A stretch of DNA of 64,000 bases from Macrostomum lignano (taxonomy: Eukaryota), in the NCBI GenBank assembly GCA_002269645.1, contig NIVC01000462.1, positions 649,516 to 713,515 of the forward strand, given 5' to 3'. Position 1 is the stretch's first letter. Each line of letters starts with the position of its first letter. Made by a program: the position numbers and the translations under genes. This document shows positions 10,131 through 52,064 of the stretch, one piece after another. The notes under the pieces are model-generated. The model saw only the letters and a program-made list of their open reading frames with translations, was not told the origin of the DNA and ran no database searches.

Positions 10131-10142
10131 ACCGTGCCTCTA

Positions 10143-10915: not shown

Positions 10916-11044
10916 TGGAAAGTTTACGGGTTGCTTTGATAGCTGGCTGCCATAGGCGTAGGAACGTTTCAAAAAGTGGGGGGGGGGCAGGTTCAGTGAC
11001 AGATTTAGGGAGGGGGGGCGCACAGGGCGCACGCCCTTGTCGAG

Positions 11045-15740: not shown

Positions 15741-16420
15741 TCAGCCGCGCACAAAGTAGTCTCCATCGGTGCTGCTCAGACTGGCAGGCGGGTAGGCGAA
15801 CCTCAACAGGTGGCACAGGCGCTGCTGGCCAGAGAAAATCACAGCCTGGCAGGCAGCTGAGGCCTCGCACAGCATCAAACACTCGGCCTTGATTTTGGCA
15901 GCGCTGGTCCAGTAGGTGCTCTGGGTGGACTCCACCGTCTGGTTGGTCCTTGGCGTCTGCTCAAAATACTTTTTATCTACAAAAATTCAATTCTGGCTTT
16001 TACCGAATGCACCAAATTTAGTTTGAATAGTCTAACAAAAATGTTTTAGAAGAGACCTGACTCAAAAGCTCACCTGAATAGGCCAAAGCGAACACGGAGT
16101 AGCGCCACGGGCCTCCGCATTTAGAAGCTCCGCTCCCAGCGCAGACGCTGTTGCAGTCGGTCTCGCTAGCAGCTCCAAGAGACCCATAGGAGTTTCCGCA
16201 GAAACAAAACTGACTGACCTGCTCACCGATGTACGGGAAACCGCCCAGTGAGCAGAAGCTGCTGCAGAGCTCGTGCGTCATATTGACACTGCTCAGTGCG
16301 TTTTCGAGAGTATCGATGCTGAACTGTCCAATTCTGCTCACACCAATGAGTCCTTTCAGATCTGTAGCTGCATTGTCTATAAAGCAGCCAATATAGGACA
16401 TCTGAGTTACTCTGCCGGCA
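15741..16420 (-). pseudogene. WSC + PAN/Apple-like gene A, 5'-truncated (no signal peptide); exons ~16420-16074 and 15976-15741
   Basis: WSC motif YIGCFID...CSSFC...CFCG...C...C.G...CG. GT-AG phase-1 intron as in the paralogues. In-frame TAA 8 codons upstream of MSYIGC, where an unrelated repeat is joined. Confidence 0.75.
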
Positions 16421-16934
16421 GCAATTTACCTCCATGCCGCCTGGCCTGATCCGTCCAAGTAGCCTCTTGCACCATCGTTGACAGACCACATCATCCGAGT
16501 CGTACTGTCCGTAGCCGTTGTAGGAGGTGCTGCGGTGCTGCAGTGCCCGGGGGTTTCCTTGTCAAGTTTTTTCTAGGCATCCATCAACTCTTACCTCCCT
16601 TACCTTTGGTTTTTCCACGGGCTATTTCTGTACACTCTAACTTTATTATAACATTGTTCACTCTTAAAATACACGAAATTTAGGAGCTAAGCGCAATTTA
16701 AAGATGGCATGCAACTGTAAATCAACTGACCTGCACTTTAGGGTTGGGGTCAGGGATAACTGACCCCGTTAGGTTTTATGTGGGTTGTCAATCTAGTCTA
16801 CTCACCGATGGTCTCGATAACTTTATGAAATGATTTTAATAATGTATTTTTAATGCTAGATAGGTTACTATGAGCAGTACCCTGAGCACATTACGAAATA
16901 TCTGATTACGCAAAAATCTTTCCTAAAAAACGAC

Positions 16935-16941
16935 TATAAAA
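16935..16941 (+). promoter_or_regulatory. TATA box of WSC gene B
   Basis: GACTATAAAAGCCC ~50 bp before the ATG; same motif upstream of gene E (30556-30562). Confidence 0.55.
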
Positions 16942-16989
16942 GCCCTAGGAGGAAACACTTCCTAGCAGCTCCCTTCCGCCAAGCCCAAA

Positions 16990-17499
16990 ATGCTCAAGAC
17001 GATTTCATATTTTACAAACTTTGCTGTTCTGGTTGTTAGCATTTCTGGCAGGGCAACTCAAGTGTCCTACATTGGCTGCTATGTGGACAATGAGACCAGA
17101 GATCTGAGAGGACTCACTGGAGTGAGCAGAATCGGACAGTTCAGCATCGAAAGCTTCACGCTGAGCAGCCTTAATATGACACACGAGCTCTGCAGCAGCG
17201 TCTGCTCTCTGGGCGGCTTCCCGTACTTCAGTGTGCAGGCCAATTATCATTGTTTCTGCGGCAGCTCCTACGGGTCTCTCGGAACTGCAAACGAGACCGA
17301 CTGCAACCGCGTCTGCGGTGGAAACGGAGCTCAAATGTGCGGAGCCTCGTGGCGAAACTCAGTCTTCGCCCTAACCTACCCTTTTATCACTGAACGAAAC
17401 ACTGATATATATATATATATATATTTTATCACTGATAAAATATACCCTGACGACGGCCCTAGTGGGTTGAAACGCGTTGGTTTTCGCCATAAATGTTGA
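16990..17499 (+). CDS. Secreted WSC-domain protein B; PAN exon lost, C-terminus derived from a Penelope-like insert
   Basis: Signal peptide + complete WSC domain almost identical to gene E. The sequence switches to foreign DNA at 17382, next to where E has its splice donor. Confidence 0.7.
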   Translation: MLKTISYFTNFAVLVVSISGRATQVSYIGCYVDNETRDLRGLTGVSRIGQFSIESFTLSSLNMTHELCSSVCSLGGFPYFSVQANYHCFCGSSYGSLGTANETDCNRVCGGNGAQMCGASWRNSVFALTYPFITERNTDIYIYIYFITDKIYPDDGPSGLKRVGFRHKC

Positions 17500-17545
17500 T
17501 CTTAAGCTTTATTTATTTGCTATTAATTAAGCGAGCAACTCTACT
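17382..17545 (+). mobile_element. Penelope-like element terminal (pLTR) remnant
   Basis: (TA)n tract, then a CTGACGA...GAAACGCGT hammerhead signature typical of PLE termini. Confidence 0.6.
17444..17481 (+). ncRNA. Minimal type I hammerhead ribozyme (PLE-type)
   Basis: Stem I ACC/GGT; core CUGACGA; stem II GGCCC-UAGU-GGGUU; GAAA; palindromic stem III ACGCGU; GUU cleavage triplet. Confidence 0.65.
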
Positions 17546-17732
17546 ACAGAAAACCTGTGCTTCCTGGACCTTGGAGGGCTGTACTCTGAGCTCGGAGTGA
17601 AAGACGGCTCTGATTGGTCTAAGAGCGAAGCGCCATCTCGCAAATTTCGCACTTAAAAGTCTGCTCGCTCTTGTCTGACTGGAGATTCAGAACTGCCGAA
17701 TTCGTGTTCCAAGTTCCTTTTCGAGCAGAGAA

Positions 17733-18487
17733 ATGTTCCGCCCAGAAGCGGCTGTGTCCGTTCTGTTCTGCGCTGCCCTCCTGCTGACTTGCGCCACCTG
17801 CAGACTCGTCAGCTTCTCCTACCTGGGCTGCTACAAAGACCATTCGTTCGCCAGAGACCTAAACGGGCTCAGTGCAGTCAGCAAGATCGGTGTGTTTATT
17901 GTCTATCACCCTTCTGGTGGTGTCTTTTCGAGCATGATGTCGCACGAGTTGTGCAGCAGCATCTGCTCGATCGGCAGCTTCCCGTACTTCGGGGTGCAGT
18001 ACGGGGCTGAGTGCTACTGCGGCAACTCGTACGGATCCCATGGCCTGGTGAGCGACGCCAACTGCAGTATGGATTGTCCCGGTAACGCGATGCAGAAATG
18101 TGGCGACTCCAACAGAAACTCCGTGTTCGCCCTGAGCTACTCAGGTACTATTATGGTTTCTACTAAAAGCTCAGTTTCTACCATCGCCAGAATGACACCA
18201 TGCTGAGACGATAATTTAAGAGGCTTCATTTTCGTTTAATTTCAGTTTCGGACAACAACACCTACACTGTGGTGAAGCAGTCCAGCCCTCCCGTGACATC
18301 CGGTACCACCTCCGTCTGGCCTGTCGCTGCCCAGTCCGTCAAGGACTGCCTGCTGTGGTGCAGCGCCAGAGCCGACTGCCGGGCCGCCGTTTTCTCCCGA
18401 CAGGAGCTCGCCTGCCACCTGCTGGAGTTCGTGTACCCGCCAGGCCACCTGAGCGGGCCCGAGTGGACTCTGTTCGTGCGTGGCTGA
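17733..18487 (+). CDS. Secreted WSC + PAN/Apple-like protein C; exons 17733-18144 and 18246-18487
   Basis: Signal peptide, WSC cysteine pattern, GT-AG phase-1 intron, PAN-like C-x3-C-x5-C...C-x-L, stop after FVRG. Confidence 0.9.
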
Positions 18488-20051
18488 GCTCGAGCGGTGC
18501 TGTGACCGACTGGCTCAGTTGTTGAGCTGAGCATGGACTCAAAGCAAACTTTAACGACCAGTTTTTGATGCGTAATCCTACAGATTTGATCCAAGCAAAA
18601 ATAAAAGGCTTAATAACATTAGTGACGCAACTGGCATGACTAAATTCGGTTTATTCTGTTCTGTTCGTGCTTTTAGCCCTACCGGTAAAGCATTTTTTGT
18701 CAGTCAATGTCAGCGATTTCGATACGCTCTGAAAAATAGTTGCACGTGTGCAACTGACTATCTTTTACTAACTCATCCTGTGATCAACCGAAAGTTGCAG
18801 AACATGTGAACTGAGCACCCACCGAGTGCTTGAATGGCTCTCGTTAATGGGGCGTTAGGAAGGAATGTGTATGCGAAGTTTTATTTGGTCCATTAATATT
18901 TCAAAGTCTAATGATGAATTATTTTAATAAAATTCAGACATTCTTCCACCAAACAGGGAACATAGCAACTCAGAGGCCGAGGACGAACAAAGAATGAACA
19001 GAATTATGAAAGCTTTTACACGAAGTGCTCGAAGTACTGCTTTAGCAGATGATGCATTTCACCTGGGAGACTCCTTGCTACGAGTGTACCTGAATTATGC
19101 TTCAGTCACAGTGGACTACATAAATTCGCCACATATACTCTCTTAATTCAATTAATATTGGTACGGGCCACCAGTTTTACCATCTGGGTAAACTAGAGCA
19201 ATGCGGAGTTTTGTGCCTTGATGTTTAATAAGAACACAAATTGTTCCGATGGGGTCGAGAATCGAACCCCGAACTTTCAGTTGTGTGTCGTGAGCACAGT
19301 TTAAATTCATAAATACATAAGTCTGGTAAAGGATACACATATAAACTTTATCTCCACAATGTATTATTCTCAGTGCTACAGTATAACAGTAAGAGAAAAT
19401 GCGGTAGAGAAATAACTGAATAACCAGGTACCAGCTGCCACTAATTTGCAACAGCATTTCCTCTGACGCTGCTTCATTGGTTTTGGTTGAAACAAAACTA
19501 TACTTTTTGTATTCATCTGTTTGTCATCGAAACACAATGCGGTTTTTCTGCGACTGTGGCTACCCACTGAGTCCCGAGCTTCTAAGGAAGTAGCTAGGCT
19601 AGATATTGCATATAAATCCAAGAAAAAGCAATCAACATGAAGGCAGTCTTGCTCCCGACGTCTCGCATCATAGCAGCTCAAGAGTTTGGCTTTGTCTGTG
19701 AGTTCAGGCAAATTAGCTAGCTCGCGTTTTAAGAAGCTCACTAGCAATCTGCCCCTCTCCCCGTTCGGAAAGCAACAAGAGAAATAAAAAAACATCTGGA
19801 TAAACTACATTACCATTTTTCCATCTGCGTTCACCATTGTTATTCTCTCAGGAAAATGACGTTTAAAGGAAAAAATCATCCACCCGGAACGCCAACTGTC
19901 TGGCCTAGAATATCAGATGTTCCAGGAGCTTTGGCTCTAAGCATGTGAATAACTCCAATGAGCCAACGCATTTCAGAAATTCCCCCTGTTAGCCTTGACA
20001 TCCTAGCTATTTTCCCCATGTGTCTTTTACGGTCGAAAGGGCGATTCTTAT

Positions 20052-20420
20052 TTGGTTGACATGTCGCTTCTTTTCTGTTAGACCATGTCGCTTCTTTTCT
20101 GTTTCACCATGTTGCTACTTTTATGTTTGACCATGTCGCTTCTTTTATGTTTGACCATGTCGCTTCTTTTATGTTTGACCACGTCGCTTCTTTTATGTTT
20201 GACCATGTCGCTTCTTTTATGTTTGACCATGTCGCTTCTTTTCTGTTTCACCATGTTGCTACTTTTATGTTTGACCACGTCGCTTCTTTTATGTTTGACC
20301 ATGTCGCTTCTTTTATGTTTGACCATGTCGCTTCTTTTATGTTTGACCATGTCGCTTCTTTTATGTTTGACCATGTTGCTTCTTTTACGTTTGACCACGT
20401 CGCTTTTTTATGTTTGAGAA
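20052..20420. repeat. 24-bp minisatellite (ATGTTTGACCATGTCGCTTCTTTT)n; paralogous 23-bp array at 37200-37910
   Basis: Tandem array; its flanks are shared with 36800-37990. Confidence 0.95.
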
Positions 20421-20961
20421 GCGCTTTTATGTGACTCAGCAGCCGCTGAAGAATTGTTCTGCCAAATTTCATATACTAGCTAGTTTATTAACTGATCGGA
20501 ATGTAGAGAACTGTAAATCATCATAACGCACTACTTTGAAGTAATATTCTAATAAAATCTATTTAAACAGAAGTGACTCAGAGCCCTACGGTAGGACCAA
20601 CGTTTTTTGATCAATCAAACATACGCGACCTAAGTAAATAACGGGGTTTAAATCAGTTTTCCACCAAAATTTTACTATAAATGTAGGAGAAAATCCGAGT
20701 AAAAAAATTCAGACTCAGAGCGGTCTCAAGCAATACCTTGTAATACGTTAACTAAGAAGATCCATATCTCCGAGAGAAGAAATCCGGACAGATTGGTAAG
20801 CGTTTCCCGATTTAGTTCTTTGCTATAGCACAAATAAGTTGATAAATTGAGTTTATGAGAGCCACTTATTGTCGACACATTTGAGAAAGGCCTCCTTGTT
20901 TCCTAGGATACATTCCTAGAGGATTTATTGATTTGAATTGAGTTATCCGTTGCGTTTCGGA

Positions 20962-23344: not shown

Positions 23345-23525
23345 TATACGGGCATTCGTCTATGGGCATTTGTCTATGGGCATTTGTCTATGGGCATTTG
23401 TCTAATGGGCATTTGTCTATGGGCATTTGTCTATGGGCATTTGTCTATGGGCATTTGTCTACGGGCATTTGTCTATGGACATTTGTCTATGGGCATTTGT
23501 CTATGGGCATTTGTCTATGGCTATT
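23345..23525. repeat. 14-bp minisatellite (CTATGGGCATTTGT)n
   Basis: Direct tandem array. Confidence 0.95.
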
Positions 23526-24775: not shown

Positions 24776-24784
24776 GTCCTTAAC

Positions 24785-25530
24785 CAGGGGCGTCGCCAAC
24801 GGGAGGGGGACAGGGGGACATGTCGCCTCCAGTAAAAGATCTGAGGGGACATGCCAATGCTTTGTCCCCCCACCCCTACCTTGTGGCCCGTTGTGAAAAT
24901 CAATAACAATTGCTGCATGGTGACAAAATAGCGCCTGCGGCGCTGAAATGAGTGCCTGCGGCGCTGAAATGAGTGCCTGCGGCGCTGAAATGAGTGCCTG
25001 CCGCGCTAAAATGAGTGCCTGCGGCGCTAAAATGAGTGCCTGCGGCGCTGAAATGAGTGCCTGCGGCGCTGAAATGAGTGCCTGCGGCGCTGAAATGAGT
25101 GCCTGCGGCGCTAAAATGAGTGCCTGCGGCGCTAAAATGAGTGCCTGCCGCGCTAAAATGAGTGCCTGCGGCGCTAAAATGAGTGCCTGCCGCGCTAAAA
25201 TGAGTGCCTGCGGCGCTAAAATGAGTGCCTGCCGCGCTAAAATGAGTGCCTGCGGCGCTGAAATGAGTGCCTGCGGCGCTAAAATGAGTGCCTGCCGCGC
25301 TAAAATGAGTGCCTGCGGCGCTAAAATGAGTGCCTGCGGCGCTGAAATGAGTGCCTGCCGCGCTGAAATGAGTGCCTGCGGCGCTGAAATGAGTGCCTGC
25401 AATGCTAAAATGAGTGCCTGCCGCGCTGAAATGAGTGCCTGCGGCGCTGAAATGAGTGCCTGCCGCGCTGAAATGAGTGCCTGCAATGCTAAAATGAGTG
25501 CCTGCAATGCTAAAATGAGTGCCTGCAATG
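24785..25530 (+). mobile_element. Small non-autonomous element with an expanded 21-bp minisatellite (array ~24930-25512)
   Basis: Homologous to 11045-11423; about 27 units versus about 9. Confidence 0.7.
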
Positions 25531-25948
25531 CCGATTCCGAAAATAATGTAAGTAGTATGCATGAGGGGGCTTCCAGGACAATTTTTGTTAAATCTCCCCT
25601 TAGATCAACATCTACTAAGATCTATTCATAAATAATGCGCTTACACCTAAAATCAGCCATCCCAATGCAATACTTACAACCACTCATCTAAGGGGGATAA
25701 AAAAGTCACCCACCCCTTCCATAAAACAACCTAATCCCATTTAGATCGACATCTACTACGATCTATTCATATGCAATGCACTGACAGTTATAATCAGCTA
25801 TCACCATGCAATACCTACACCTGTTTATCTTAAATGGGAAAACTAGTCGATTCCATAATCGATTCTAGCTAGCATGACTAAGCATTTTTTAGCCTGAACT
25901 AAACTGCGCATAACCAAGGCTCCTCAACCACAACCGCTACTGAACTAC

Positions 25949-26351: not shown

Positions 26352-26369
26352 TTTTAGATTTTATTAAAT

Positions 26370-28297: not shown

Positions 28298-28415
28298 AAG
28301 CAGCACGCGAACCCGAGAGTTCTAAGAGAGAATGAAACGCTTTGAAATGTTCCACAAAAACTTTGATAGCGTTCCCTGATATTCAACATCGATTTCTGTT
28401 ACACAAAGCAAATTA

Positions 28416-29370
28416 CACTCCGAATCTCTCCTGACATTCACTCCGAATCCCTGCAGACATTCACTCCGAATCTCTCCTGACATTCACTCCGAATCCCTGC
28501 AGACATTCACTCCGAATCTCTCCTGACATTCACTCCGAATCCCTGCAGACATTCACTCCGAATCTCTCCTGACATTCACTCCGAATCCTTGCTGACATTC
28601 ACTCCGAATCTCTCCTGACATTCACTCCGAATCCCTGCAGACATTCACTCCGAATCTCTCCTGACATTCACTCCGAATCCCTGCAGACATTCACTCCGAA
28701 TCTCTCCTGACATTCACTCCGAATCCCTGCAGACATTCACTCCGAATCTCTCCTGACATTCACTCCGAATCCTTGCTGACATTCACTCCGAATCTCTCCT
28801 GACATTCACTCCGAATCCCTGCTGACATTCACTCCGAATCTCTCCTGACATTCACTCCGAATCCCTGCTGACATTCACTCCGAATCTCTCCTGACATTCA
28901 CTCCGAATCCCTGCAGACATTCACTCCGAATCCCTGCTGACATTCACTCCGAATCTCTCCTGACATTCACTCCGAATCTCTCCTGACATTCACTCCGAAT
29001 CTCTCCTGACATTCACTCCGAATCTCTGCTGACATTCACTCCGAATCTCTCCTGACACTCACTCCGAATCTCTCCTGACATTCACTCCGAATCTCTCCTG
29101 ACATTCACTCCGAATCTCTCCTGACATTCACTCCGAATCTCTCCTGACACTCACTCCGAATCCCTGCTGACATTCACTCCGAATCTCTCCTGACATTCAC
29201 TCCGAATCCCTGCTGACATTCACTCCGAATCTCTCCTGACACTCACTCCGAATCTCTCCTGACACTCACTCCGAATCTCTCCTGACATTCACTCCGAATC
29301 TCTCCTGACATTCACTCCGAATCTCTCCTGACATTCACTCCGAATCTCTCCTGACACTCACTCCAAATCT
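28416..29370. repeat. 23-bp minisatellite (CACTCCGAATCTCTCCTGACATT)n, partly as alternating 46-bp dimers
   Basis: Direct tandem array just downstream of the Ly6-like stop codon. Confidence 0.95.
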
Positions 29371-29419
29371 CTTTTGGCCTTCACTCCGGAGTGGTATAGG
29401 GAATTTACGAGTATAGCAA

Positions 29420-29616: not shown

Positions 29617-30620
29617 GTGCTTTAACGTAAGGTTACGCTTACTCTATACTACTACTCTCAAAAACTCGTACTATTCTAAGTCTAGATGCAGACATCAACT
29701 GATTCTCACATCAGTACGTACCTTTTGGATGAAGGGAGAACTTACAATCCCCAACACTGCTCTGTACAGCTTCTATTGTTCTAAAAAATAGGGAACTTCC
29801 CCACAGCTTCTCTTGTACCCAGGAAGGGAGAACTACGTTTGTCTATACGTGGATCCAACAGTACTCTAAAAATCTCTTACCCAATCTAGTTGCTAGAACG
29901 GGAAATTGACGCGGCGCACACTGACCAGTTGCAGGCCGCCCTCAAGATAAGCGACGACGGAGTCAATCACTCCGTCGTTTACTTCCATGCCGCCTAGCCT
30001 GATCCGTTCAAGTGAACTCGTGACAGGCATTCGAGTTGTACTGTCAGTAGCCGCTGTAGGAGGTGCTGCGGTGCTGCGGTGCCCAGATTTTCCTTGTTGA
30101 GTGTTTTCTGGGTGTTACAAGTCTGTCTTTTGTATTGCGTTATATTTACGCAAGTTGTGTGCCGTGCACTCTCGGCTCTTGCAGCCGTTGCTCTTATCAG
30201 AGTCTTCTTGAATACTTATGTATTTCTATTTTTCACGAAGGCTCTTTGACACTTGCGCCAACTAATCGCAGTACAGGCAAATAAACTTGTCTATGGCAAT
30301 TACAAATTAAAGTTCAATCTGCTCGGGCAGAAGCCAGCCCGCAGCACTGGGCAACCATCAACCCCTTTCCTTTCGTACCTTTGGTCTTACCTCTACTGAA
30401 CAGTCTAGTGATCTAGATCTACTGATCGATGGTCTCGATAACTTTACGAAATGATTATAATAATGAATTTTAAATGCCAGAAACGCTACTTTAAGCAGTA
30501 CCCTCAGCACATTACAATATAACTGATTCCGCGAAGATCTTTGCTAAAATACGACTATAAAAGCCCAAGGAAGAAACACTTTCTAGCAGCTGCCTTCCTT
30601 CCCGGCCCAAAAATTCTCAA

Positions 30621-31344
30621 ATGATTTCATACTTTGCAAGCCTCGCTGTCCTGGTGGCCTGCGTTGCCAGCAGGTCAACCCAGGTGTCCTACATTGGCTG
30701 CTTTGTGGACAATGAGACCAGAGATCTGAGAGGACTCACTGGAGTGAGCAGAATCGGACAGTTCAGCATCGAAAGCTTCACGCTGAGCAGCCTTAATATG
30801 ACACACGAGCTCTGCAGCAGCGTCTGCTCTCTGGGCGGCTTCCCGTACTTCAGTGTGCAGGCCAATTATCATTGTTTCTGCGGCAGCTCCTACGGATCTC
30901 TCGGAACTGCAAACGAGACCGACTGCAACGGCGTCTGCGGTGGAAACGGAGCTCAAATGTGCGGAGCCTCGTGGCGAAACTCAGTCTTCGCCCTAACCTA
31001 CCCGGGTGAGTGAGCTCAGTGTGAGCAGTTCTGATTTTACCTCTATGTTTTCAGCGTCTTTAAGTAGAATTTATGATCAACTCTAACAGAAATTTTCTAC
31101 ACTTTCAGGCAAAAAGTATTTTGAGCAGACGCAGATGCCAAACCAGACGGTGGAGTCCACCCAGAGCACCTACTGGACCAGCGCTGCCAAAATCAAGGCC
31201 GAGTGCTTGATGATGTGCGAGGCCTCAGCTGACTGTCAGGCTGTGATTTTCTCTGGCCAGCAGCACCTGTGCCACCTGCTGAGGTTCGCCTACCCGCCTG
31301 CCAGTCTGAGCAGCACCGATGGAGACTTCTTCGTGCGAGGCTGA
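30621..31344 (+). CDS. Secreted WSC + PAN/Apple-like protein E; exons 30621-31005 and 31109-31344
   Basis: Signal peptide, WSC domain, GTGAG donor, TTTCAG acceptor, in-frame PAN-like exon ending FVRG*. TATA at 30556. Confidence 0.9.
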
Positions 31345-31896
31345 GCTCACAGTCAAGCATTTAGCGTTGGAATAATTCAGCTCCTAAGGCTTCTAGACTG
31401 GACAAAATATTTTGAAAGAATTTGAAAATTTGTCTAAACTACTTCATTGGGAGTTTTTTAAAGAAAAAAATGTAATAATTAACTTGCTAACTTCATATTC
31501 GGTTTTAAGCAACAAGAAGGAAATACACAGTGCGTGACAAGCTTCAACCAGCTACCGCAAGCAATACTCTTCAAAATATGCATCTTTTTTCAGTGCCAAA
31601 AGTGTTCTGCCTTGTAAAGCATATAGTTAAACAAAGCCGTCCTAGAATCCCTTGGGCATCCCTGCCCGCTGCCATTTTTACCTAACTAGCTGGCGGAGCC
31701 TTCTCCTGAAAGCTATTGTGCTTGCTTAGCTTTGGAACGTTGGAAGTAATTAATTATTAATCTGTGAGTTTCTTGACAACGCGGAGCTGCAAAGCTATTC
31801 GGGGCCTTACTGTTGATTAGCAACTAAGAGAACTTTTTCCAGCTCAGTAAGCAATCTTTTGCTAATTAATGGAACCTGACGCACTCCTTGTTTTCT

Positions 31897-31944
<48 letters not shown>
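31897..31944. repeat. (CAG)n microsatellite
   Basis: About 16 perfect units. Confidence 0.95.
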
Positions 31945-31950
<6 letters not shown>

Positions 31951-32207
31951 GTATAGCTTTTTGCAGCGCATTTGGGCTTTCGTGCATTGAATTTAATCCA
32001 AAATGCGTTTGCCCATGCAACGGAGATTCAAAATTCAAAATGAGAAACACTCGAATGGCCAATGGCTGCTTTATGGCTGCTGCAGCTCGCAGCAGTCTGT
32101 GGACAGAGTCTGTGGATAATCTAATCGATAAAAAAAGCCATTTTAAATGAGAATTTCTCTCATCGCGCGCAATAGCAGCAGCAAAACGTACACACAGCAG
32201 CAGCAGA

Positions 32208-32310
32208 ATGCCGCCTCAAACAAGTGAAGCAGATCGCCGTCGCCTAACCGATGCCATCAACGCTGGGCACTCCATCAAAGACGCAGCAAGGGTGCTGCAG
32301 CTGTCAATGC
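32208..32310 (+). mobile_element. Possible Tc1/IS630-like transposase N-terminal HTH remnant
   Basis: MPPQTSEADRRRLTDAINAGHSIKDAARVLQLS resembles a transposase HTH start; only ~33 aa. Confidence 0.4.
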
Positions 32311-32369
32311 TGCCATCCTTTGTTGTCTTTTGTTCTTCTGCCTTTCAATGACTCTACATTGACTTTTGT

Positions 32370-32370
32370 C

Positions 32371-32448
<78 letters not shown>

Positions 32449-32501
32449 TAGTAGTAGTGGTAGTAGTACTAGTACTAGTAGTAGTAGTAGTAGTAGTAGT
32501 G

Positions 32502-32581
<80 letters not shown>
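32370..32581. repeat. (TAG)n microsatellite
   Basis: About 70 units with a few TGG/TAC variants. Confidence 0.97.
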
Positions 32582-33009
32582 TAGTTTATACGAAACTAAG
32601 TGCTATCTTTATAAGAGTGCACTGCCATTCTCTACAAATTGTAAGATGTTTCTTCACAAAAATTCCTTTCTAGCTACTATACAGTAGACGGTCTCTCATG
32701 TTATTGACATTTCTTCTCAGACAATAGAGCAGTAGACGTGTAAAATTCCATAGTACACAGGCCAAGCGTTTCCAAAAGTGTCTTAAGTTTAAGAACGTTG
32801 ATGGAGTTTCCATCTTAGACAATTAGTACCCAAGAGCGAACCAAGGCAGTACACTGCTGTGTACAAATGTTTTTAAAATGAGACTAAAACTCTTACGTAG
32901 CTACTGACTTGAAGCAGCACGTCCTGAAAATCGTTGAAAAACAGACAGACAAAAGTGCTATAAAATCAAGGTAGGCTGGACCATAGACAGCAGGCGAGTA
33001 CTTTCTGAC

Positions 33010-33360
33010 TGATAGATAAGCAAGCCTAGGTTGCGAGGCCCCTATCGCAACCCCAAGATAAAGAAACCAAGGTTCAACCTCGGGGGTGCGTCCAGCTCAC
33101 GCCAGTAGTCAACAGGTTTGCAGGGGAGACATCGGCGACCCACATCCAGCCGGTATCTCGGACGAAAGCGCGAAGGTCACGGATGTTGTCCGGGATGGTC
33201 AGCTCGTTCATCCACTTGGGGTGGCCGACGTATTTGTGCCTTGCCTTATTGAGGTAAGGGCAGAAGGTGACGTAATGCTCCGTAGTCTCCTCTCCTATGC
33301 CACAGAGGGACAAGTGGGGGCTGGAACCGGTTTGCAACGAGATGGTTGCACGTAGCCCAC
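33010..33360 (-). mobile_element. 3' end of a non-LTR retrotransposon (C-terminal CCHC finger)
   Basis: [17 protein letters not shown]....R matches the CxxC...ETxxH....C motif of LINE ORF2 C-termini. Confidence 0.65.
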
Positions 33361-34776
33361 CTAGGCCGTTAATTATAGCCTAGGCGTGTTGAAACGGGCT
33401 GAAACGCACGGCATCCGCCCGCTGCAATTATCTATGGCCGACTTCCATAAGTAAAAACTCGTATGCATATAAGTATCTAGTTAATGGGCGGTATGAATAA
33501 AAATCGAGAAAATCTCGGCAGAAATTCTTGTAAGCCAAGATAAAAAGGAAAATATTTTCTTAACTGTCGAGATTTTCACGCGTAGAAATTCTCTCAAGCT
33601 AAAAAAATCTGCAAAAGACATGAATAAAGTTTTCTTGGCTTGCAAGACTTTCTCGCAAGAATTTATGCAGCAAATTGTCGTCTATGGGCCAACCTGGGCA
33701 GGGTTGGGTGGAATCTCGAGAGACAGAAATAAGACTGGGTGCACTGTGCTCTGATGTACGCCAGTCTCTTTCGCAACGCCCGACTGGAAGACAAAGCACC
33801 ACCTCTGGTCTCTGTTGATTCCCGCAAAAAGTTCTCTGCCAGGAAGGACACGTGTTCCTCAGAAAACCGATGCAGCTGTTGGTATGTGCGCCAGGCGGAG
33901 AGGCCTGTCGTGGCTGATACGCCTTGCGCTTCCTTATTAATGCAAACATTTCAAATCTAAAGCAAAAAAATTCAGTGATAGAAATTCAGTGTCTGAGCTT
34001 TAGAAGAAGAAGCTCGTCAAAAACTCTAGTTTTTACACAGACATTGAGAAAATTGTGATTTTATTCATACGAGAGCGAGAAAATCTTTTTCTTCACAGAT
34101 TTTCTTAGCAATATTTTCTTGTCTCAAAATCTCAAGAAAATCTTCAGAAGAAATTCTCGCGAGAAAAAGTAATTTTCTTATTCAAAAAGGCAAGAAATTC
34201 TCGCTTTCTTGCAAGAAAAAAGTTTCTTAATAAATGCTTAGTATCAGTTACGATTTTTTAAATTCGAAGAATAAGGAGTTTTGGCCATAGACAATTTTTT
34301 AGATTTCATTCTTTCCTTCTTTGTCTAGAGTGCTGGTGTGCAAATGTGGAAGTTCCGCCCCAACACCCCCGCAAGGCGCTCAGCGCCCCCTTGACCCCAC
34401 TCTCTTCTGACTTTGCCATAGACATTTTGAGAGGGCCGTGAAACCGACTGAATACATTGGAGTAAGTGGGATTTTACCATGGACAGTCTCGAAAATCCCT
34501 TAAATTTTGCTGGATGCAAAGCGCTTTTATAGCGCAGTGAAAAAAATCTGGATTAAATGGCGTGATTTCGACTTGTTTCGAATTTGTGAATTTGAATTGC
34601 ATTCAACTACCAGAAAACCTGTGCTTGCTGTACCTTGGCAGGGTTGTACCCTGGGACCTCTGATTGGTCGAACAGCGATGCGCTACGAGTATCTCTTAAA
34701 AAGTCTGTTGGCTCTTATCTGCCTGGCAATTCACAACTGCCGAATTCGTGCTTCAAGTTCCTCTCCTAGCGGAGAA

Positions 34777-35518
34777 ATGTTCCGCCCAGCAGCGACTCTC
34801 TCCGTTCTGTTCTGCACTGCATTCCTGCTGACTTGCGTCACCTGCAGACTCGTCAGCTTCTCCTACCTGGGCTGCTATAAAGACAATCCGTCCACCAGAG
34901 ACCTGAACGGGCTCAGTGGAGTCAGCAAGATCGGCGGGTTCAGTGTCCATCACCCTTCTGGTAGTGTCTATTTGAGCATGATGTCGCACAAGCTGTGCAG
35001 CAGCATCTGCTCGATCGGCAGCTTCTCGTACTTTGGGGTGCAGTACGGGGATGAGTGCTACTGCGGCAACTCCTTCGGATCCCATGGCTTGGCGAGCGAA
35101 GCCGACTGCAGCATGGATTGCCCAGGAAACGCGGTGCAGAAATGCGGCGGGTCCAACAGAAACTCCGTGTTCTCACTGAGCTACCCAGGTACTGTTCTGA
35201 TTTCTAAAGCTCAGTGCCTATAGTCAGTTTAAAAACATGTTTACTAATGAGAAGCTGCATCTACCTCCAATTTCAGTTTCGGACAACAACACCTACACGG
35301 TAGTGAAGCAGTCCAGCCCTCCCGTGACATCCGGTGCCACCTCCGTCTGGCCTGTCGCTGCCCAGTCCGTCGAGGACTGCCTGCTCCGGTGCAGCGCCAG
35401 AGCCGACTGCCGGGCCGCCGTTTTCTCCCGACAGGAGCTCGCCTGCCGCCTGCTGGAGTTCGTGTACCCGCCTGGCCACCTGAGCGGGCCCGAGTGGACT
35501 CTGTTCGTGCGTGGCTGA
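34777..35518 (+). CDS. Secreted WSC + PAN/Apple-like protein D; exons 34777-35188 and 35277-35518
   Basis: Paralogue of C with the same intron position and phase, and an intact frame. Confidence 0.9.
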
Positions 35519-35982
35519 GCTCGAGGCGTGCAGTGACCGACTGGCTCTGTTGATGAGCTGAGCATTGACTCAAGCAAACCGTATCAAACCGTCTTTGATG
35601 CGAAGTCCCACAGCCCTGATCTAACTAAAAATAAAAGCCTTAAAAATATTTGTGACGCTACAGGCATGACTAAATTCGGTAGATTGCTTTCGCCCTACCG
35701 GTACAGTCACTCAAAGTCAGTGTGTAACTGACTTTACGTTTACTAACTCATCGTGTAACCAACCGAAAGTTGCAGGAGCAAGTACTCAACGCCACCGAGT
35801 GTTTGAATTGCTAACGCTCAATTAGCTAATGGGCGTTACTTTGCAGAATTAGAAGTAATCATTAGGAATGAATGTGTATACTGCATTAGCAAATGATGCA
35901 TTACATTAATTAATGCATTTCAGCTGGGAGACATTCCTGTTGCTACCCAAATTATGTTTCAGTCACAGTGGACTTTAATTCG

Positions 35983-36016
<34 letters not shown>

Positions 36017-37199
36017 AATTCAGCCAATACTGGTACCATTTTACGGCTAGGTGAACTGAAGAAATGCGGAGTGAAGTGTCTTGCTGTCAAGGACACAAAT
36101 TGTTCCGATTGGGTTGAGAATCGAAGCCCCGACCTTTCAGTCGTGAGTTGTGAGCGCGGTGTGAATTTATTTCCACAATGTATGCTTCTCAGTGCACTAT
36201 AGCTTTGAGAGAAAATTCATTAGAGAAATAGCTGAATGATCAGGTACCATAAGCACTCACTGATTTGCAACGGTATTAAAAATCCAATGTCATAAAGCAA
36301 CTGCACGGTAACTTGGTGGGCCGCGGACTTCTATTTTAGACTGGACGAATTTCATTTGGAAGACTACATGTAGATCATAAATTTCTGCAGCTAGTAAATA
36401 AATAATGTAGCTATCAATAGTAGTTTTCAGCTCGTTAATAGGGGTCACCTAATCTGACGAAGTCGGTGCTTTCGTATCTTTTGTATTCTTTCTTTGTTAT
36501 AGAAAACACAACGCAGTTGACTGTGAATGTGGCTACCCCCAGAGTCCGGACCTTCTCAGGATAGATATTGCAAACAAATCCTACAGAAAGCAATCAACAT
36601 AAATACAGTCTTACTCTCGACGTACGTCTCGCATCAAAGCAGCTCAAGAGCTGAGTAAACTATTGTTTGCCATTGTCGCTGACTTCAGGCAGACCAGATA
36701 GCTCAGTTGCGTTTTGTGAAGCTCCCTAGCAATCTGCCTCCCCGTTGGGAAGGCAACAAAAGAAAGGAAAAAAATATCTGAATAACCTACATTTCCAGTT
36801 TTCCCTGTGTGCTCACCATTGTTATTCTCTCAGGAAAATGATTTTTAAAGGAAAAAAGCATCCACCCTGAAAGACAGCTATCTGGCCTACGATATCAGGT
36901 CTACCAGGAGCTTTGGCTCAAAGCAGATGAGAAACCCCGATGAGCCAACGCATTTCAGCACTTCCACCCGTTAGCCTTGACATCTCAGCAATTTCTAACG
37001 AGCATTGATCGCCACAGCAATTCAGCAATCCCCCCATGAACCTTGACATTGCATCGAGTCCGCTGAGCCCAAGAACTTCATGGCAATTTCTCTGAGTCTT
37101 TGAAATCTTAGAAATTCCACCAACAGCCCTGACAATTTAGCAATTCACACCCATCAGCTTTGACATCTTTGCGATTTCCGATGAGTCTTTACGGTTGAA

Positions 37200-37910
37200 T
37201 GGGCGCTTCTTTTATGGTTGACATGTCGTGTGTTTTATGTTTCACATAATCCTCTTTTATGGTTTACATGGCGATTCCTTTATGGTTGACATATCATGTC
37301 TTTTATGCTTCACATAACCCTTTTTATGGTCGACATGTCGTGTTTTTTATGTTTCACATAACCCTTTTTTATGTTTGACATGTCGCTTCTTTGACGATTG
37401 ACATGTCGCTTCTTTTATGTTTGACATGTCGCTTCTTTTATGTTTGACATGTCGATTCTTTCAAGGTTGACATGTCGCTTCTTTTATGGTTTAGATGTCG
37501 ATTATTTTATGGTTGACATGGCGATTCTTTTATGTTTGACATGTCGCTTCTTTTATGTTTGACATGTCGATTCTATCAAGGTTGACATGTCGCTTCTTTT
37601 ATGTTTGACATATCGATTCTTTTATGTTTGACATGTCGATTTTTTATGGTTGACATGGCGATCCTTTTATGGTTGACACGTCGCTTCTTTTATGGGTGAA
37701 ATGTAACTTCTTCTATGTTTGACATGACGCTTCTTCTGTGTTTGACATGTCGCTTCTTTTATGTTTGACATATCGATTCTTTTATGTTTGACATATCCAT
37801 TCTTTTATGTTTGACATGTCGATTCTTTTATGTTTGACATATCGATTCTTTTATGTTTGACATGTCGATTTTTTATGGTTGACATGGCGATTCTTTTATG
37901 GTTGACAAGC
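37200..37910. repeat. 23-bp minisatellite (TTTGACATGTCGCTTCTTTTATG)n
   Basis: Degenerate tandem array, paralogous to 20052-20420. Confidence 0.9.
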
Positions 37911-38430
37911 GCTCTTATGTGACTCGGTAGCCGCTGATGAACTGCTCTGCCAAATTTCTTACCAGCTCGTAGTTTAACTGATCGGAATGTAGCCAGCAGT
38001 GCTTACTTACGAGTAGTCTAATTCGGACAACTGCAGTCGCATAATATATTGTATTTCTTTAACTTCATACATGTAGACGATATTATATCTTTAAAAAAAT
38101 GCATATTACAAAAGCATTAGTTGGCCCCTGCAGTCAGATATTGTTACAGCAGACGGTTGTCAAGACCCTTTCAATCTACGTCATCTAAAACCGGGATGAG
38201 CTGCAGGATGTCCTGCGACGCTGCTTTTACAACTTTGAGGTGGAATCATGGTGTTGTAAGATTTTCACCCTCGTTTATGCCAATGTTTAAGCCACTTTAA
38301 TTTAGTTTATGACATGAAAATTTGACTCTGACTTAGTTGCAAATTGCACAGCGAGAAGTCCAAGATCAGATAAGATTTGGAGGAGCGCACAGGAGGATCG
38401 TGTCTTAAAAATGAGATCTTTCGGGTATAG

Positions 38431-40799
38431 TGTGGTGAGCGAGAGACAAGCCAGTCAGGTTTAGTCCAACAAACAAAAAAAATTCTAACCCTCACCCAAA
38501 GGGTGGAGCTATTCTTATATTTACTCGAGAACGCATGTACATATACAAACAGAGCGCGCATGTACATCGGATGCCTTGACCCCCAAACACCGACTAGCAA
38601 AACAAACCAGTGAGTATACTCACTTTACAACATTCACCCTCCTCCTTAACAGTCACTAATTCCCTTCACAGCTGGCAATCAATGCGTCACGACCTGGCCG
38701 TACCACAACGGTGGTGCCCGCAGTCGCGCACTGCGCCGCAGCTCCGCGTCGGCCTCAACGGTCTCCGGCGGCGGGTCCGTCGGCCTTCTGGCGCTGCCGG
38801 CTCTGCAGCCACTGGCGGCTGTGGCGGCATTGCCGTTGCCGAAGTCGTGCTGGCACCCTCGGGCTCCGCATGAGGCATACAGAGGCTGGTGTGCCACCTT
38901 GAGCCGTCCTCTAACCTGACGATCGTCGGGCTGATGATGTCGTTGACCCGTAGAGGTGGTGACACGTGGCTCTGCAGCTTGCCTCGCATCCGCGGAGATC
39001 GCACTCGCACCAGGTCGCCGCACCCTAATTGAGGCGGTCGGGTTCTTTTGAGCCACTTGAACTTCTTTTGAACCGAATCCCTTAGGCTGAGCGGCACTCT
39101 GCGCAACGGTTGAGCAGTCGGTTGCACCGCGGGGTTGACTCGCGGCCTGTGCTGAAATCCTTTGATGTGTCCGAGTCCCTGAGTCAACTGGTCGAACCGG
39201 CCTGGGATCCAGTCAGGCAGGGCTCTGGTGCCGACTGTCTGCACTCGCTCACCGTCTGCAGTGACGATCCGCAGTCCCAGCTGATCCATGAGGTCGCACC
39301 CCAGGATGTCAGATCCGGTATTGACCACGCTAAGGTTGACGTAAGGCACTACTTTGTCCTTGAGCTGCACCGAGGTCAGGATGTCACCAAGCACGCCGAT
39401 CTTGCTGCCGTTGAAAGCGACCAGCTTCCGTGATGACGCCTGCAGGGGCACGTTGGAAAAAGTCTGTTGTACGTCGTCTTGGTGATGATGGAGACTCGCG
39501 AACCGGAGTCAACGAGCAGCTTGACAGGCCTCCCGTTTAGCAGCACTTCGCAGTGCTTGCTTGCTGCCGCAGCTGTCGACACAGTGCAGATGGAGTACTC
39601 ATCCTGAAGCTGTCGCACTCGGTTGCCGCTCCTGCAGACTCTGGCGAAGTGCCCGCACTTGCCGCAGGACTTGCACTTCTGCCCCTTTGCTGGGCAAGTC
39701 TGTCCACCGAAATGCGCCGCTGAGCCACAGTAGCCGCAGCTCCGGCCGTTGGTTGTCGGCTTCAGTGCCTCGTGCTGTCTTGCCGCCGCTCCACTTTTCT
39801 TGGCCTTGCTGATCTGCTGGACTCCCCACGAGCTGCTTGGGTCTGTGTGGCTGCCTCCCTTGATGGCCTGGGCCTCCAGCAGTCCAGTTTCCAGTCGCTC
39901 CGCCAACTGCACAGCTGTCGCCAAGGTCAGCTCCGGCTCCATAAGCAGTCGCTCCCTGATGTGGTTGCTGAGCACTTTCTCGACGAGCTGGTCACGCAGC
40001 ATCTCCTCCTGGAAGGTCTTGAAGTCGCAGTTCGAAGCCAGGTTTCGCAGCGCGGCAACGAAGTCGCTGATCTTTTCGCCCGGTCGCTGAGCTCTCTGTC
40101 GGAATCTGTGCCTCTCAGAAACTGCGTTGACCTTGGGTCCGAAGTGCGTGTCCAGGAGCTTCAGCGTGTCATTAACTGTTGATGGCGGTTGCTCTCCTTC
40201 CTCCTGATTGCTGCTGGCTTGTAGAGACATGTAGATGTTTTGTCCCTCTGCACCCAAACAGTGGATGAGCAACGCTTGTTTTCTTTGCTCCGGCAGATCG
40301 ATGGCTCCCGATGCTAGCAGGTAGTTGCTGAACATTGCTTTCCATCGGTTCCATTCAATCAGCGGTGCTCCAGCGGCTGGCAGAAACGGCTGCGGTGGCG
40401 AAATGTTGACACTCATTCTGTTGGCTGTATCTCTGCTTGACTGTTGGGCTGCTGCTTGTTGAGACCCTCTCTGTGGGTCGCCCATTGCACTTGCATTTGC
40501 ACCTTCTGTGCTGCTCATGACTTGGCAGATTTTAGAGTTCGCACTTGTGCTGAATCACGCTGGCCCAAATCAATTGATTTCTCCGCGCGACGCCAAAATG
40601 TGGTGAGCGAGAGACAAGCCAGTCAGGTTTAGTCCAACAAACAAAAAAATTCTAACCCTCACCCAAAGGGTGGAGCTATTCTTATATTTACTCGAGAACG
40701 CATGTACATATACAAACAGAGCGCGCATGTACATCGGATGCCTTGACCCCCAAACACCGACTAGCAAAACAAACCAGTGAGTAAACTCACTTTACAACA
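38431..40799 (-). mobile_element. Complete-ended, internally deleted Ty3/gypsy LTR retrotransposon (2.37 kb; gag + protease only)
   Basis: LTRs 38431-38632 and 40599-40799 (TG..CA; 1 substitution + 1 indel). 5-bp TSD TATAG. PBS TGGCGTCGCGCGG; PPT TTAAGGAGGAGGGTGAA. Gag with CCHC knuckle; LLVDSGS protease. Confidence 0.95.
39376..40518 (-). CDS. Gag (zinc knuckle) + aspartic protease of the LTR element; continues after a 1-nt shift into 39451-38687
   Basis: CGYCG...H....C and CKSCGKCGHFARVC knuckles; VKLLVDSGSRVSII. Confidence 0.85.
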   Translation of the reverse strand: MSSTEGANASAMGDPQRGSQQAAAQQSSRDTANRMSVNISPPQPFLPAAGAPLIEWNRWKAMFSNYLLASGAIDLPEQRKQALLIHCLGAEGQNIYMSLQASSNQEEGEQPPSTVNDTLKLLDTHFGPKVNAVSERHRFRQRAQRPGEKISDFVAALRNLASNCDFKTFQEEMLRDQLVEKVLSNHIRERLLMEPELTLATAVQLAERLETGLLEAQAIKGGSHTDPSSSWGVQQISKAKKSGAAARQHEALKPTTNGRSCGYCGSAAHFGGQTCPAKGQKCKSCGKCGHFARVCRSGNRVRQLQDEYSICTVSTAAAASKHCEVLLNGRPVKLLVDSGSRVSIITKTTYNRLFPTCPCRRHHGSWSLSTAARSACLVTS

Positions 40800-41833
40800 T
40801 ATAGCCGCAGAGTGCACGTTAAACATCGGCTCAATGCCTAGCAAACTTCTATAGTTCTACAGTTGGAATCACGGAAGCGATTTCCAGGCAAACTAGGATG
40901 ATTGTGACTGTGCTAGGAAGATAGTTCTGAACAATAGCTTTTCTATTCTATTGTTTATTAGTCGTCTAATAAACAATAACAAAACACCATGGATGTTTTG
41001 ATTTCAAAGTTAGCCAACACACATTTGACGGAAGTTAAGCATGGGCGATCTACAGGAAATCAAGCGAAAATCCCACAGGAAGCGAACAACTGTATTGATC
41101 CATTGTTAACCATCATGGACTGTTTCCGCACCTGCACTGCAACGTTGCTTATGGTGCAAGGGTCCGCTACGATCGGACTCGATCGCGCCTCTGTCTACAG
41201 CTCTCTGCTGTCTGCTGTCAGCGCTGGTTGTGAGACGATATGTCGCCAAGAAGGCGTTGCAAAATGTTTGAATAAAATTTTCAGACTTTTTTACCAAGCA
41301 TAGAGTTGCTGGAGTCATGGACAAACTGTACGGCAACAGCTTACAAACAAGATGTCGGTCGGCTAATGTGCCAAAAGAAACAGAAAACTTCTTGCATCGA
41401 CTTTCCACTTTAGTTGCCAGTGTGTGTGTGACGCTCTTCCACAAATCCTATAGAAGAAAAAGCCCACAGAAAAATACAATGAAAGCAGAAATCCATAATT
41501 TTGAAATTAATCTCTTTTGTGTTGAAAATCAGGCAGGAAAAATCCGGAAAATTTCTAACCAAGCGCTGATGAATTTTCAAGAGGAAGTTTGTCTGCAACC
41601 ATAGGCATTTTTTATTTCATTTTATTTCTGAAGCACACGGCGCAAAAAACAGCACGAGTGCAAAAACTAACAGAACCCCTGAATAAGAGAGTTTCTGCAA
41701 TGAAACCAACACAGCTTTTTAGCTTAAACTTTTATTTGTCTCGAGGATGTGGGACTTCGCATCAAAGATTCAGTTTGCTTGAGTCCATGCTCAGCTCATC
41801 AGCTGAGCCAGTCGGTCACCGCACCGCTCGAGC

Positions 41834-42577
41834 TCAGCCACGCACGAACAGAGTCCACTCGGGCCCGCTCAGGTGGCCAGGCGGGTACACGAACTCCAGC
41901 AGGTGGCAGGCAAGCTCCTGTCGGGAGAAAACGGCGGCCTGGCAGTCGGCTCTGGCGCTGCACCGGAGCAGGCAGTCCTCGACGGACTGGGCAGCGACAG
42001 GCCAGACGGAGGTGGTACCGGATGTCACGGGAGGGCTGGACTGCTTCACTACCGTGTAGGTGTTGTTGTCCGAAACTGAGAAATTGCACGATAAATAAGC
42101 TTTTCAATAATTAGCATGTTTTCATTCTGACTAAAGGTACAGGGATTTAGAAATCAGAATATTTGTACCTGGGTAGCTCAGGGAGAACACGGAGTTTCTG
42201 ACGGGGCCGCCACACTTCTGCATCGCGTTTCCCGAGCAATCCATGCTGCAGTCGGCTTCGCTTACCGGGCCATGGGATCCGAAGGAGCTGCCGCAGTAGC
42301 ACTCTGTGCTGTACTGCACCCCGAAGTACGGGAAGCTGCCGATCGAGCAGATGCCGCTGCACAACTCGTGCGACATCTCTGCGCTGCGGACTCTCTTGTA
42401 ATTTTCGACATCGAATCCACCGATCCTGCTGCCTCCACTGAGCCCGTTCAGGTCTCTGGGTGACACACGGTCTTTATAGCAGCCCAGGTATTCGAAGCGG
42501 ACGAACCTGCAGGTGACGCAAGTCAGCAAGAGGGCAGTGCAGAACAGAACGGAGAGAGTGGCTGTTGGGCGGAACAT
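41834..42577 (-). CDS. Secreted WSC + PAN/Apple-like protein F; exons 42577-42169 and 42075-41834
   Basis: Paralogue of C/D, inverted, with the same intron and an intact frame. Confidence 0.9.
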
Positions 42578-51988: not shown

Positions 51989-52060
<72 letters not shown>

Positions 52061-52064
52061 AGAG

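Follow-up and report, generated by a model that had tools for sequence, protein, structure and literature searches.

In a window of 64,000 nucleotides from the flatworm Macrostomum lignano (contig NIVC01000462.1, positions 649,516 to 713,515; 'the window' is this whole stretch) we analysed a tandem cluster of six gene copies, A to F, belonging to a family of small predicted secreted proteins in which an N-terminal WSC domain and a C-terminal PAN domain are encoded on separate exons. The most interesting property demonstrated here is that concerted evolution is restricted to one exon: it holds the PAN core together, and the adjoining WSC exon diverges. Judged from the sequence comparisons, the constancy of the PAN exon is best explained by concerted evolution within a few discrete PAN types through gene conversion, together with ordinary purifying selection. 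Our overall explanation, to which we give about an even chance of being correct, is that of a tandem family of secreted WSC+PAN proteins that undergoes concerted evolution restricted to one exon and whose products would serve as lectin-like extracellular adaptors.

A tblastn search of the whole window returned exactly six WSC(+PAN) copies, all lying between 15.7 and 42.6 kb, of which C, D, E and F are intact (206-217 aa) and A and B are truncated. As had been described before, they form two subfamilies within the window, A/B/E and C/D/F. In order along the window, the copies are:

Copy A, minus strand: exon 1 remnant 16401-16074, intron 16073-15977, exon 2 15976-15741; 5'-truncated WSC+PAN gene, 187 aa.
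Copy B, plus strand: TATA box 16935-16942, WSC exon 16990-17382, end of the open reading frame (ORF) 17499; WSC exon only, spliced model.
Copy C, plus strand: CCAAT-type box CTGATTGGTC 17610-17619, exon 1 17733-18144, intron 18145-18245, exon 2 18246-18487, AATAAA 18600-18605; intact, 217 aa.
Copy E, plus strand: TATA box 30556-30563, exon 1 30621-31005, intron 31006-31108, exon 2 31109-31344; intact, 206 aa.
Copy D, plus strand: exon 1 34777-35188, intron 35189-35276, exon 2 35277-35518, AATAAA at about 35630 (whole feature 34777-35635); intact, 217 aa.
Copy F, minus strand: exon 1 42577-42169, intron 42168-42076, exon 2 42075-41834, AATAAA at about 41736-41731; intact, 216 aa.

Among C, D and F, the PAN exon differs at 3-4 of 80 residues in each pair, the count that the preliminary description had given, with five variable columns in all. 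Synonymous sites proved to be equally constant. Nei-Gojobori estimates for the C/D/F pairs gave a synonymous divergence (dS) of 0.24-0.33 and a nonsynonymous divergence (dN) of 0.09-0.21 in the WSC exon, compared with a dS of 0.016-0.086 and a dN of 0.017-0.023 in the PAN exon, and the synonymous contrast between the two exons had Fisher p-values of 0.04, 0.007 and 9e-5 in the three pairs. For A and E, the WSC dS was 0.54 and the PAN dS 0.16-0.18 (p = 0.008). The gradient was steepest in a third subfamily, with a dS of 1.2-1.9 in the WSC exon, 0.2-1.1 in the linker and 0.03-0.14 in the PAN core, including pairs located on different scaffolds; in one such pair, L2a and L4e, 1 of 36 synonymous sites had changed in the PAN core and 50 of 74 in the WSC exon. 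Overall, within PAN types, the PAN dS lies 3-60 times below the WSC dS. Sliding identity along C, D and F was 94-100% in exon 2, 46-80% in the intron and 62-94% in exon 1, and the high-identity island begins at the splice acceptor and extends about 70 nt into the 3' untranslated region (3'UTR), the PAN core measuring about 140 bp.

This constancy does not hold between subfamilies or species. Over 153 pairs from different subfamilies, mean identity was 0.52 for PAN and 0.56 for WSC, and the PAN module was the more similar of the two in 53 of the 153. A comparison with another organism was made possible by a short contig found in two ENA metagenome assemblies, ERZ27309172 (L008, 1-630) and ERZ28655790 (L009, 1-600), the one exception to M. 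lignano among the full-length matches that we looked up. On it, the last part of a WSC exon is followed by an intron, in phase 1 and placed as in the M. lignano genes, and by a PAN exon that ends in ...LLRFAYPPASLSGIAGDYYQRG*, and the gene structure therefore exists in at least one organism besides M. lignano; tandem repeats of the last 18 nt follow its stop codon. This environmental homologue is at most 64% identical to any copy in the window or the other loci, both modules being about 50-64% identical (PAN up to 64%, WSC up to 60%). The dS relative to it was 0.4-0.7 for the PAN core and 1.1-2.4 for the WSC fragment, so the PAN core can accumulate synonymous change; between PAN types, its dS reaches 0.67-1.2. 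Within the E subfamily, the dN/dS ratio (omega) of the PAN core was 0.1-0.3. Since the PAN module is constant at synonymous sites within its types, but not between subfamilies and species, these comparisons do not indicate a specially constrained effector. The earlier idea of a variable sensor coupled to a constant effector thus survives in part: the variation is concentrated in WSC loops and the PAN module is nearly invariant within a subfamily, but the effector constraint is contradicted by the equally constant synonymous sites and by the between-subfamily identities.

Gene conversion left a visible trace elsewhere in the cluster. Over the last ~300 nt of the WSC exon, copies B and E have 3 differences (99% identity), compared with an identity of about 81% upstream and in the signal-peptide region, and the concordant run had a permutation p-value of 0.007 in a GENECONV-style test. 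The B-E segment is a gene-conversion tract, located in the WSC exon, and it shows that conversion operates in this cluster. The GC content at third codon positions (GC3) was 0.77-0.86 in PAN and 0.60-0.78 in WSC exons, as expected from GC-biased gene conversion, and the conversion of the PAN core is probably GC-biased.

Two other causes of the low exon-2 dS were considered and rejected. Overlapping or antisense ORFs do not account for it, as E-type exons show the same effect without such ORFs, and neither does codon bias alone, the difference in GC3 within C/D/F (0.82-0.84 against 0.77-0.78) being too small for a 4-18-fold drop in dS. The ORFs in question, in alternative frames or antisense and 67-156 aa in length, lie across exon 2 of C, D and F (18242-18594, 35244-35577 and 41589-42114), with none in the less GC-rich E-type exon 2, and we read them as a composition effect of an exon with 66-68% GC.

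The mechanism that we propose would combine these elements as follows. Purifying selection would keep the PAN core similar enough to continue recombining, resulting in concerted evolution, and the intron and WSC exon, having diverged beyond the reach of conversion, would be left to drift apart or diversify. The proteins would act extracellularly, as lectin-like adaptors, with the PAN module self-associating or binding a partner common to every protein of its PAN type, and the WSC module binding a glycan or glycoprotein by the end that bears its loops.

At the protein level, these are known domains in an uncharacterised, lineage-specific family. Pfam WSC (PF01822) matched all six copies with 51-63 bits against a cut-off of 27.8 (E-values 1e-13 to 2e-17; 1.2e-16 for C), and PAN_1 (PF00024) matched exon 2 with 28.9 bits for the C-type (E-value 1e-6 for C) and 28.4 bits for the E-type against a cut-off of 21.4, which places both domains of the preliminary description above their thresholds. 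Twelve cysteines are invariant across 20 family members, eight in the WSC module (C33, C74, C78, C94, C96, C111, C115 and C123, with G124 of the KCG(G) motif also invariant) and four in the PAN module (C172, C176, C182 and C194). The third disulfide of apple-type domains, which have six cysteines, was not found in exon 2, which carries four only, and the module is therefore a PAN domain rather than an Apple domain in the strict sense. A short linker rich in Ser, Thr, Pro and Asn joins the two modules. The hydrophobic N-terminal helix at residues 5-20, which resembles a signal peptide, and the lack of a C-terminal anchor indicate soluble secreted proteins.

An AlphaFold (AF2) model of D, built on a 20-sequence alignment, had a mean predicted local distance difference test (pLDDT) score of 75.5, with 80-92 in the WSC region and 52-82 in the PAN region. 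Foldseek placed the WSC module closest to Kremen1 (E-value 2e-6) and to yeast Wsc1 (7PZ2; template modelling score 0.74, root mean square deviation 3.3 Å), and the PAN module, in the model region with pLDDT 52-82, had weak matches (E-values 0.01-1.4) to factor XI, the HGF N domain and TgMIC4. A family profile matched the WSC domain of Kremen1 at 2e-9, with about 20 extra residues, corresponding to the insert loop, between the first strand and the helix. The WSC domain has itself been shown to have a PAN/Apple fold (PMC9024836), and the architecture is one of two PAN-fold modules, an N-terminal eight-cysteine WSC with an insertion of about 20 residues relative to Kremen1 and a C-terminal four-cysteine PAN. 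In Wsc1, loops L1, L2, L4 and L5 cap one end of the domain (PMC9024836). The variable patches of the family are found in the D model in the loops after the strand at 27-35, in the hairpin at 54-68, in the turn at 90-92 and just before the strand at 128-135, and in this model the four patches may lie at the same end as the Wsc1 loops.

The clustering of WSC variation that had been noted earlier was recovered: in the mature WSC domain of C, D and F, 21 of the 39 variable columns fall within 24 named columns (after YKD, in the insert loop, at QYxx and at KCGxxx), a patch set that was chosen after the data were seen. Where C, D and F vary, column entropy is high in the other subfamilies as well (Mann-Whitney p = 7e-7; Fisher p = 4e-4), and the hypervariable regions are therefore real and family-wide. 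Omega is 0.35-0.68 over the whole WSC exon and 0.17-0.39 outside the loops. For the named patches, dividing dN by the exon-wide dS gave about 4 for F versus C/D (Fisher p = 5e-5) and a non-significant 1.1 for C-D, and with the patches' own dS of 0.9-1.06 omega becomes about 1.3. For loops defined independently, by columns taken only from other subfamilies, omega was 0.58-0.61 for F versus C/D and 1.7 for C-D, the latter resting on one synonymous difference, and dS was 0.75-0.81 inside these loops and 0.19-0.22 elsewhere. The excess of nonsynonymous change that had been anticipated for the loops was therefore not cleanly found, and pairwise dN/dS gave no demonstration of positive selection in the loops of the WSC domain, with a loop omega of at most about 1 and indels present.

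Of the 48 F-specific sites in exon 1, 21 fall within a loop of 16 codons that also has an indel, and the F insert loop, GFDVENYKRVRSAEM, looks like a replaced or indel segment; in general, the loops look like replaced segments, or like regions of relaxed constraint with many indels. A further M. lignano protein, P0008 (UniRef A0A1I8GC48), is 95% identical to E (30621-31344) and carries the insert loop IGSLMLSS, as in the L001 genes, in place of the IESFTLSS of E, which could be the product of a cassette exchange between paralogues.

Spliced models and tblastn upheld the gene structure proposed in the preliminary description, six paralogues in which a phase-1 intron separates the WSC exon from a PAN exon with FVRG at its end, as well as the missing signal peptide of A and the missing PAN exon of B. 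All spliced copies have introns of 88-103 nt with GT..AG borders in phase 1, and every PAN exon terminates in FVRG followed by the stop codon. The size of ~205-220 aa that had been given holds for the intact copies C, D, E and F (206-217 aa) and needs correction for the set as a whole, as the five models of about 200 aa span 187 (A) to 217 aa; the mature proteins have about 190 residues. The promoter boxes follow the subfamilies, with TATAAAAG common to B and E and CTGATTGGTC common to C, D and F. AATAAA lies about 100-112 nt past the stop in C, D and F, and copy E has no canonical AATAAA within 400 nt of its stop. Copy D is Mlig003751.g3, being 100% identical to PAA82585.1 (BOX15_Mlig003751g3), and is the only one of the six copies with a transcript-based gene model on record; as the Mlig_3_7 gene models are a genome-guided RNA-seq assembly, D is transcribed.

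Self-blastn identified a segmental duplication with two copies:

16425-20506: proximal copy of the segmental duplication, with an E-type and D-type gene pair and the downstream satellite; pairs with 29978-37992.
29978-37992: distal copy of the segmental duplication, with E, D and the satellite.

Identity within the duplicated block is 91% for B~E, 81% for C~D and 65-81% for the flanks. Copy A is inverted relative to E, and F relative to C and D. The cluster thus grew by segmental duplication and inversion, which left the relics A and B plus four intact genes. Copy A lacks a promoter and most of the signal peptide and has an in-frame stop directly upstream; its upstream region has no homology to B or E and no TATA box. 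Homology between A and E ends at 16420, five bases from the edge of the segmental duplication (16425), the 5' end of A having been removed by the duplication breakpoint. Its ORF is otherwise intact, with a dN/dS of 0.30 relative to E. Copy B has kept the signal peptide and WSC exon and lost the splice donor and PAN exon, its ORF running into a (TA)n tract.

The sequence of the window is eukaryotic: it has spliced genes along with microsatellites, satellites and fragments of retroelements. Satellite or minisatellite arrays occupy 20023-20506, 37186-37992, 24925-25531, 11079-11300, 28416-29388, 42902-43459, 9200-10200, 53200-54080 and 62300-64000; those at 20.0-20.5 kb and 37.2-38.0 kb represent a single satellite, of which each copy of the segmental duplication carries one array, and an array with a 21-bp period is present at both 11.1 kb and 24.9-25.5 kb. 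Between D and F lies a short long terminal repeat (LTR) retroelement (38431-40800), whose 203-bp LTRs (38431-38633 and 40599-40800) are 99% identical, suggesting a recent insertion. On the minus strand, it has a gag-like ORF of 380 aa that contains zinc knuckles and a second ORF, of 254 aa, which is protease/pol-like judging from its position only; a full pol is absent. Directly downstream of the cluster is a multi-exon gene for a HECT-domain E3 ubiquitin ligase (44616-53400, minus strand; Pfam HECT on the product from 44616). Two ORF fragments on the plus strand, 12402-13025 and 10617-10955, resemble by eye a retroviral-type integrase in one case and a mariner-like transposase in the other.

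The genes analysed here form one tandem cluster of a large uncharacterised family that is known so far almost only from M. lignano. With E as query, 24 additional M. lignano proteins of the same WSC(+PAN) layout were retrieved, each about 205-218 aa long, and towards the genome-wide count that the preliminary description had called for, at least 30 proteins of about 210 aa, arranged in several tandem clusters, can now be listed. Around six of these relatives, the DNA holds additional tandem clusters, the smallest with 2 genes and the largest with at least 7; they are located on four other scaffolds and at one more site of NIVC01000462.1, about 400 kb from the window. The clusters L002 (NIVC01000462.1, 246.8-267.7 kb), L004 and L005 hold 4, at least 4 and at least 7 copies, respectively, some of them fragmentary, and L004 and L005 look like duplicated versions of one locus (WSC dS of 0.03 between L4e and L5g). 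A profile search against 1.84 billion representative proteins yielded mainly multi-WSC proteins among its strong matches. All ten full-length, single-stretch matches of about 190-270 aa that we looked up were from M. lignano, and the ten multi-WSC matches of 271-394 aa that we looked up were M. lignano or metagenome proteins and did not connect the family to named seminal-fluid genes. The PAN exon alone as query returned a single environmental protein, and a scan of JGI metagenomes gave distant WSC matches only, with 30-34% identity. Our literature search found no publication on the WSC+PAN architecture, in keeping with the earlier impression that it is not a characterised family.

Gland secretion would be the likeliest site of action, going by the literature on this species. 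Within it, the seminal fluid from the prostate glands is our leading context, proposed tentatively and by analogy, because small secreted WSC proteins have been documented there in M. lignano, and seminal-fluid work was the only work joining Macrostomum and WSC in our literature search. At least 20 of 76 prostate-limited transcripts match WSC-domain proteins (Weber 2018, PMC5977470; Patlar 2019, PMC6953679), and prostate seminal-fluid candidates are also found in tandem arrays of up to 10 genes. Mlig-pro5 (RNA815_80.4) has two WSC domains, worms in which Mlig-pro46 (WSCD2-like) is knocked down gain a lower share of paternity as the second mate (P2), and knock-down of Mlig-pro63 (annotated 'WSC domain-containing 2') alters the suck behaviour of the partner (PMC5977470, PMC6953679). 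Mlig-pro4, 5, 11, 38, 46, 49, 63 and others resemble the genes of the window in being small secreted WSC genes of the same species, tandem and multi-copy, fast-evolving and mostly without annotation, but differ in gene IDs and RNA interference (RNAi) primers (18 compared) and in a stated architecture of two WSC domains (RNA815_80.4) rather than WSC+PAN (PMC5977470, PMC6953679). Mlig003751 and the other family IDs are absent among the 18 of the 76 seminal-fluid candidates with published gene IDs and primers, and the 36 RNAi primers published for these 18 had no match to the window or to loci L001-L007 at up to 3 mismatches; this comparison of identities covered 18 of the 76 candidates. If these are seminal-fluid proteins, their diversification would be driven by sperm competition or sexual conflict, and not by pathogens.

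Several observations weigh against the overall explanation that we favour. The GENECONV-style longest-run test did not reach significance among C, D and F (p = 0.13-0.29), as exon 2 is homogenised in each of them. The boundary of the high-identity island at the splice acceptor is not predicted by conversion alone and needs intron heterology that stops the tracts. Gene models are on record for D and for neither E nor F, although these lie within 10 kb of D, and the family gene IDs were found in no main text or supplement searched. Moreover, the glycan or glycoprotein that the WSC module would bind through its loop end is proposed on a carbohydrate binding assumed from the domain family.

Among other explanations, a diversified innate-immune or mucosal lectin system, in which the WSC loops are positively selected for microbial glycans and the PAN module is a constrained, constant effector, seems unlikely to us. 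Tandem expansion of secreted lectins is typical of invertebrate immunity, which speaks for it, as do the variation of the same WSC loop columns across all subfamilies, a fairly high exon-wide omega (0.35-0.68) and the ratio of loop dN to exon-wide dS of about 4 for F versus C/D (Fisher p = 5e-5). Fungal WSC domains, moreover, bind beta-glucan (cited in PMC9024836). The dS of the loops is itself about 0.8-1.0, so omega amounts to about 1.3 for the post hoc patches or 0.58-0.61 for the independent columns, the F loop appears to be a segment replacement with an indel, and synonymous sites share the constancy of PAN, which is lost between subfamilies and species, all of which argues against such a system. 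We found no immune literature on these genes and nothing linking them to the innate immunity, mucus or adhesion initially suggested, the small secreted WSC proteins of this species being prostate and seminal-fluid candidates. Less likely again is that the expansion is a mostly neutral by-product of segmental duplication in a repeat-rich and recently polyploid genome, with most copies silent or decaying and the loop hypervariability reflecting relaxed constraint. Two of the six copies are truncated, a gene model exists for D only, an omega of 0.35-0.68 is accompanied by loop indels, satellites and retroelement fragments crowd the surroundings and the genome assembly is highly redundant, as this explanation would have it; but C, D, E and F keep their ORFs, splice sites, all 12 cysteines and promoter boxes (C, D and F also their poly(A) signals), omega is 0.17-0.39 outside the loops and 0.1-0.3 in the PAN core of the E subfamily, and the exon structure is preserved in another organism.

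We also considered a self-diversifying recognition system, in which WSC loop cassettes would be shuffled by short conversions, as P0008 and F may illustrate, and the PAN core would be homogenised genome-wide into a few types docking common partners. Such a system could serve reproductive recognition between ejaculate and recipient or microbial recognition, and would be a flatworm counterpart of lysin/VERL or FREP-type systems; we give it a slim chance. Lowest of all we rate a function at the nucleotide level, for instance as a structured RNA element, a signal for localisation, a target of small RNAs or a second, overlapping reading frame, as the cause of the near-identity of exon 2 in place of conversion. 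It would fit the position of the high-identity island, whose start coincides exactly with the splice acceptor and which continues for about 70 nt in the 3'UTR, the antisense ORFs of 68-156 aa that span exon 2 in C, D and F, and the PAN-core dS relative to the environmental homologue (0.4-0.7), which is still below that of the WSC fragment (1.1-2.4). E-type exon 2, however, has an equally low dS (0.16-0.18 against 0.54 for A-E) without long alternative ORFs, the PAN core does gain synonymous change, with a dS of 0.4-0.7 between species and of 0.67-1.2 between PAN types, the higher GC3 is in line with biased conversion, and B and E directly display a conversion tract, there in the WSC exon.

The pattern of one gene part that is nearly identical, including at synonymous sites, next to another that diverges fast is known from conotoxin precursors, abalone VERL repeats and snail FREPs. 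In those systems, positive selection on the variable part is generally known to have been demonstrated, unlike in the family of the window, and the domains are unrelated. With the WSC domains of Kremen1/2 (PDB 5FWS/5FWT) and yeast Wsc1 (PDB 7PZ2), which are the best N-terminal matches, the family shares eight cysteines, the CGG motif and a PAN-like fold. Kremen, however, is a Kringle-WSC-CUB transmembrane Wnt co-receptor and Wsc1 a membrane-anchored cell-wall sensor, whereas the proteins of the window are predicted to be soluble and to consist of WSC+PAN, with about 20 residues more than in Kremen. The C-terminal module resembles the PAN/Apple modules of the HGF N domain, factor XI/prekallikrein and the apicomplexan proteins TgMIC4 and SML-2 in its PAN_1 match and four core cysteines, the fold matches being weak, and differs from apple domains in lacking the third disulfide, with Foldseek E-values of 0.01-0.3 on a moderately confident model region.

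We believe that a PAN core with a dS of about 0.03 beside a WSC exon with a dS above 1 provides a clean natural example of exon-restricted concerted evolution, and it illustrates how protein alignments, taken by themselves, can give a misleading picture of which regions are 'constant' and which 'variable'. In practice, a single double-stranded RNA that targets the homogenised PAN exon should suffice to knock down all genes of one PAN type. If the proteins are secreted by glands, and especially if they are part of the seminal fluid, they would add a WSC+PAN class to the main class of ejaculate proteins of a model hermaphrodite.

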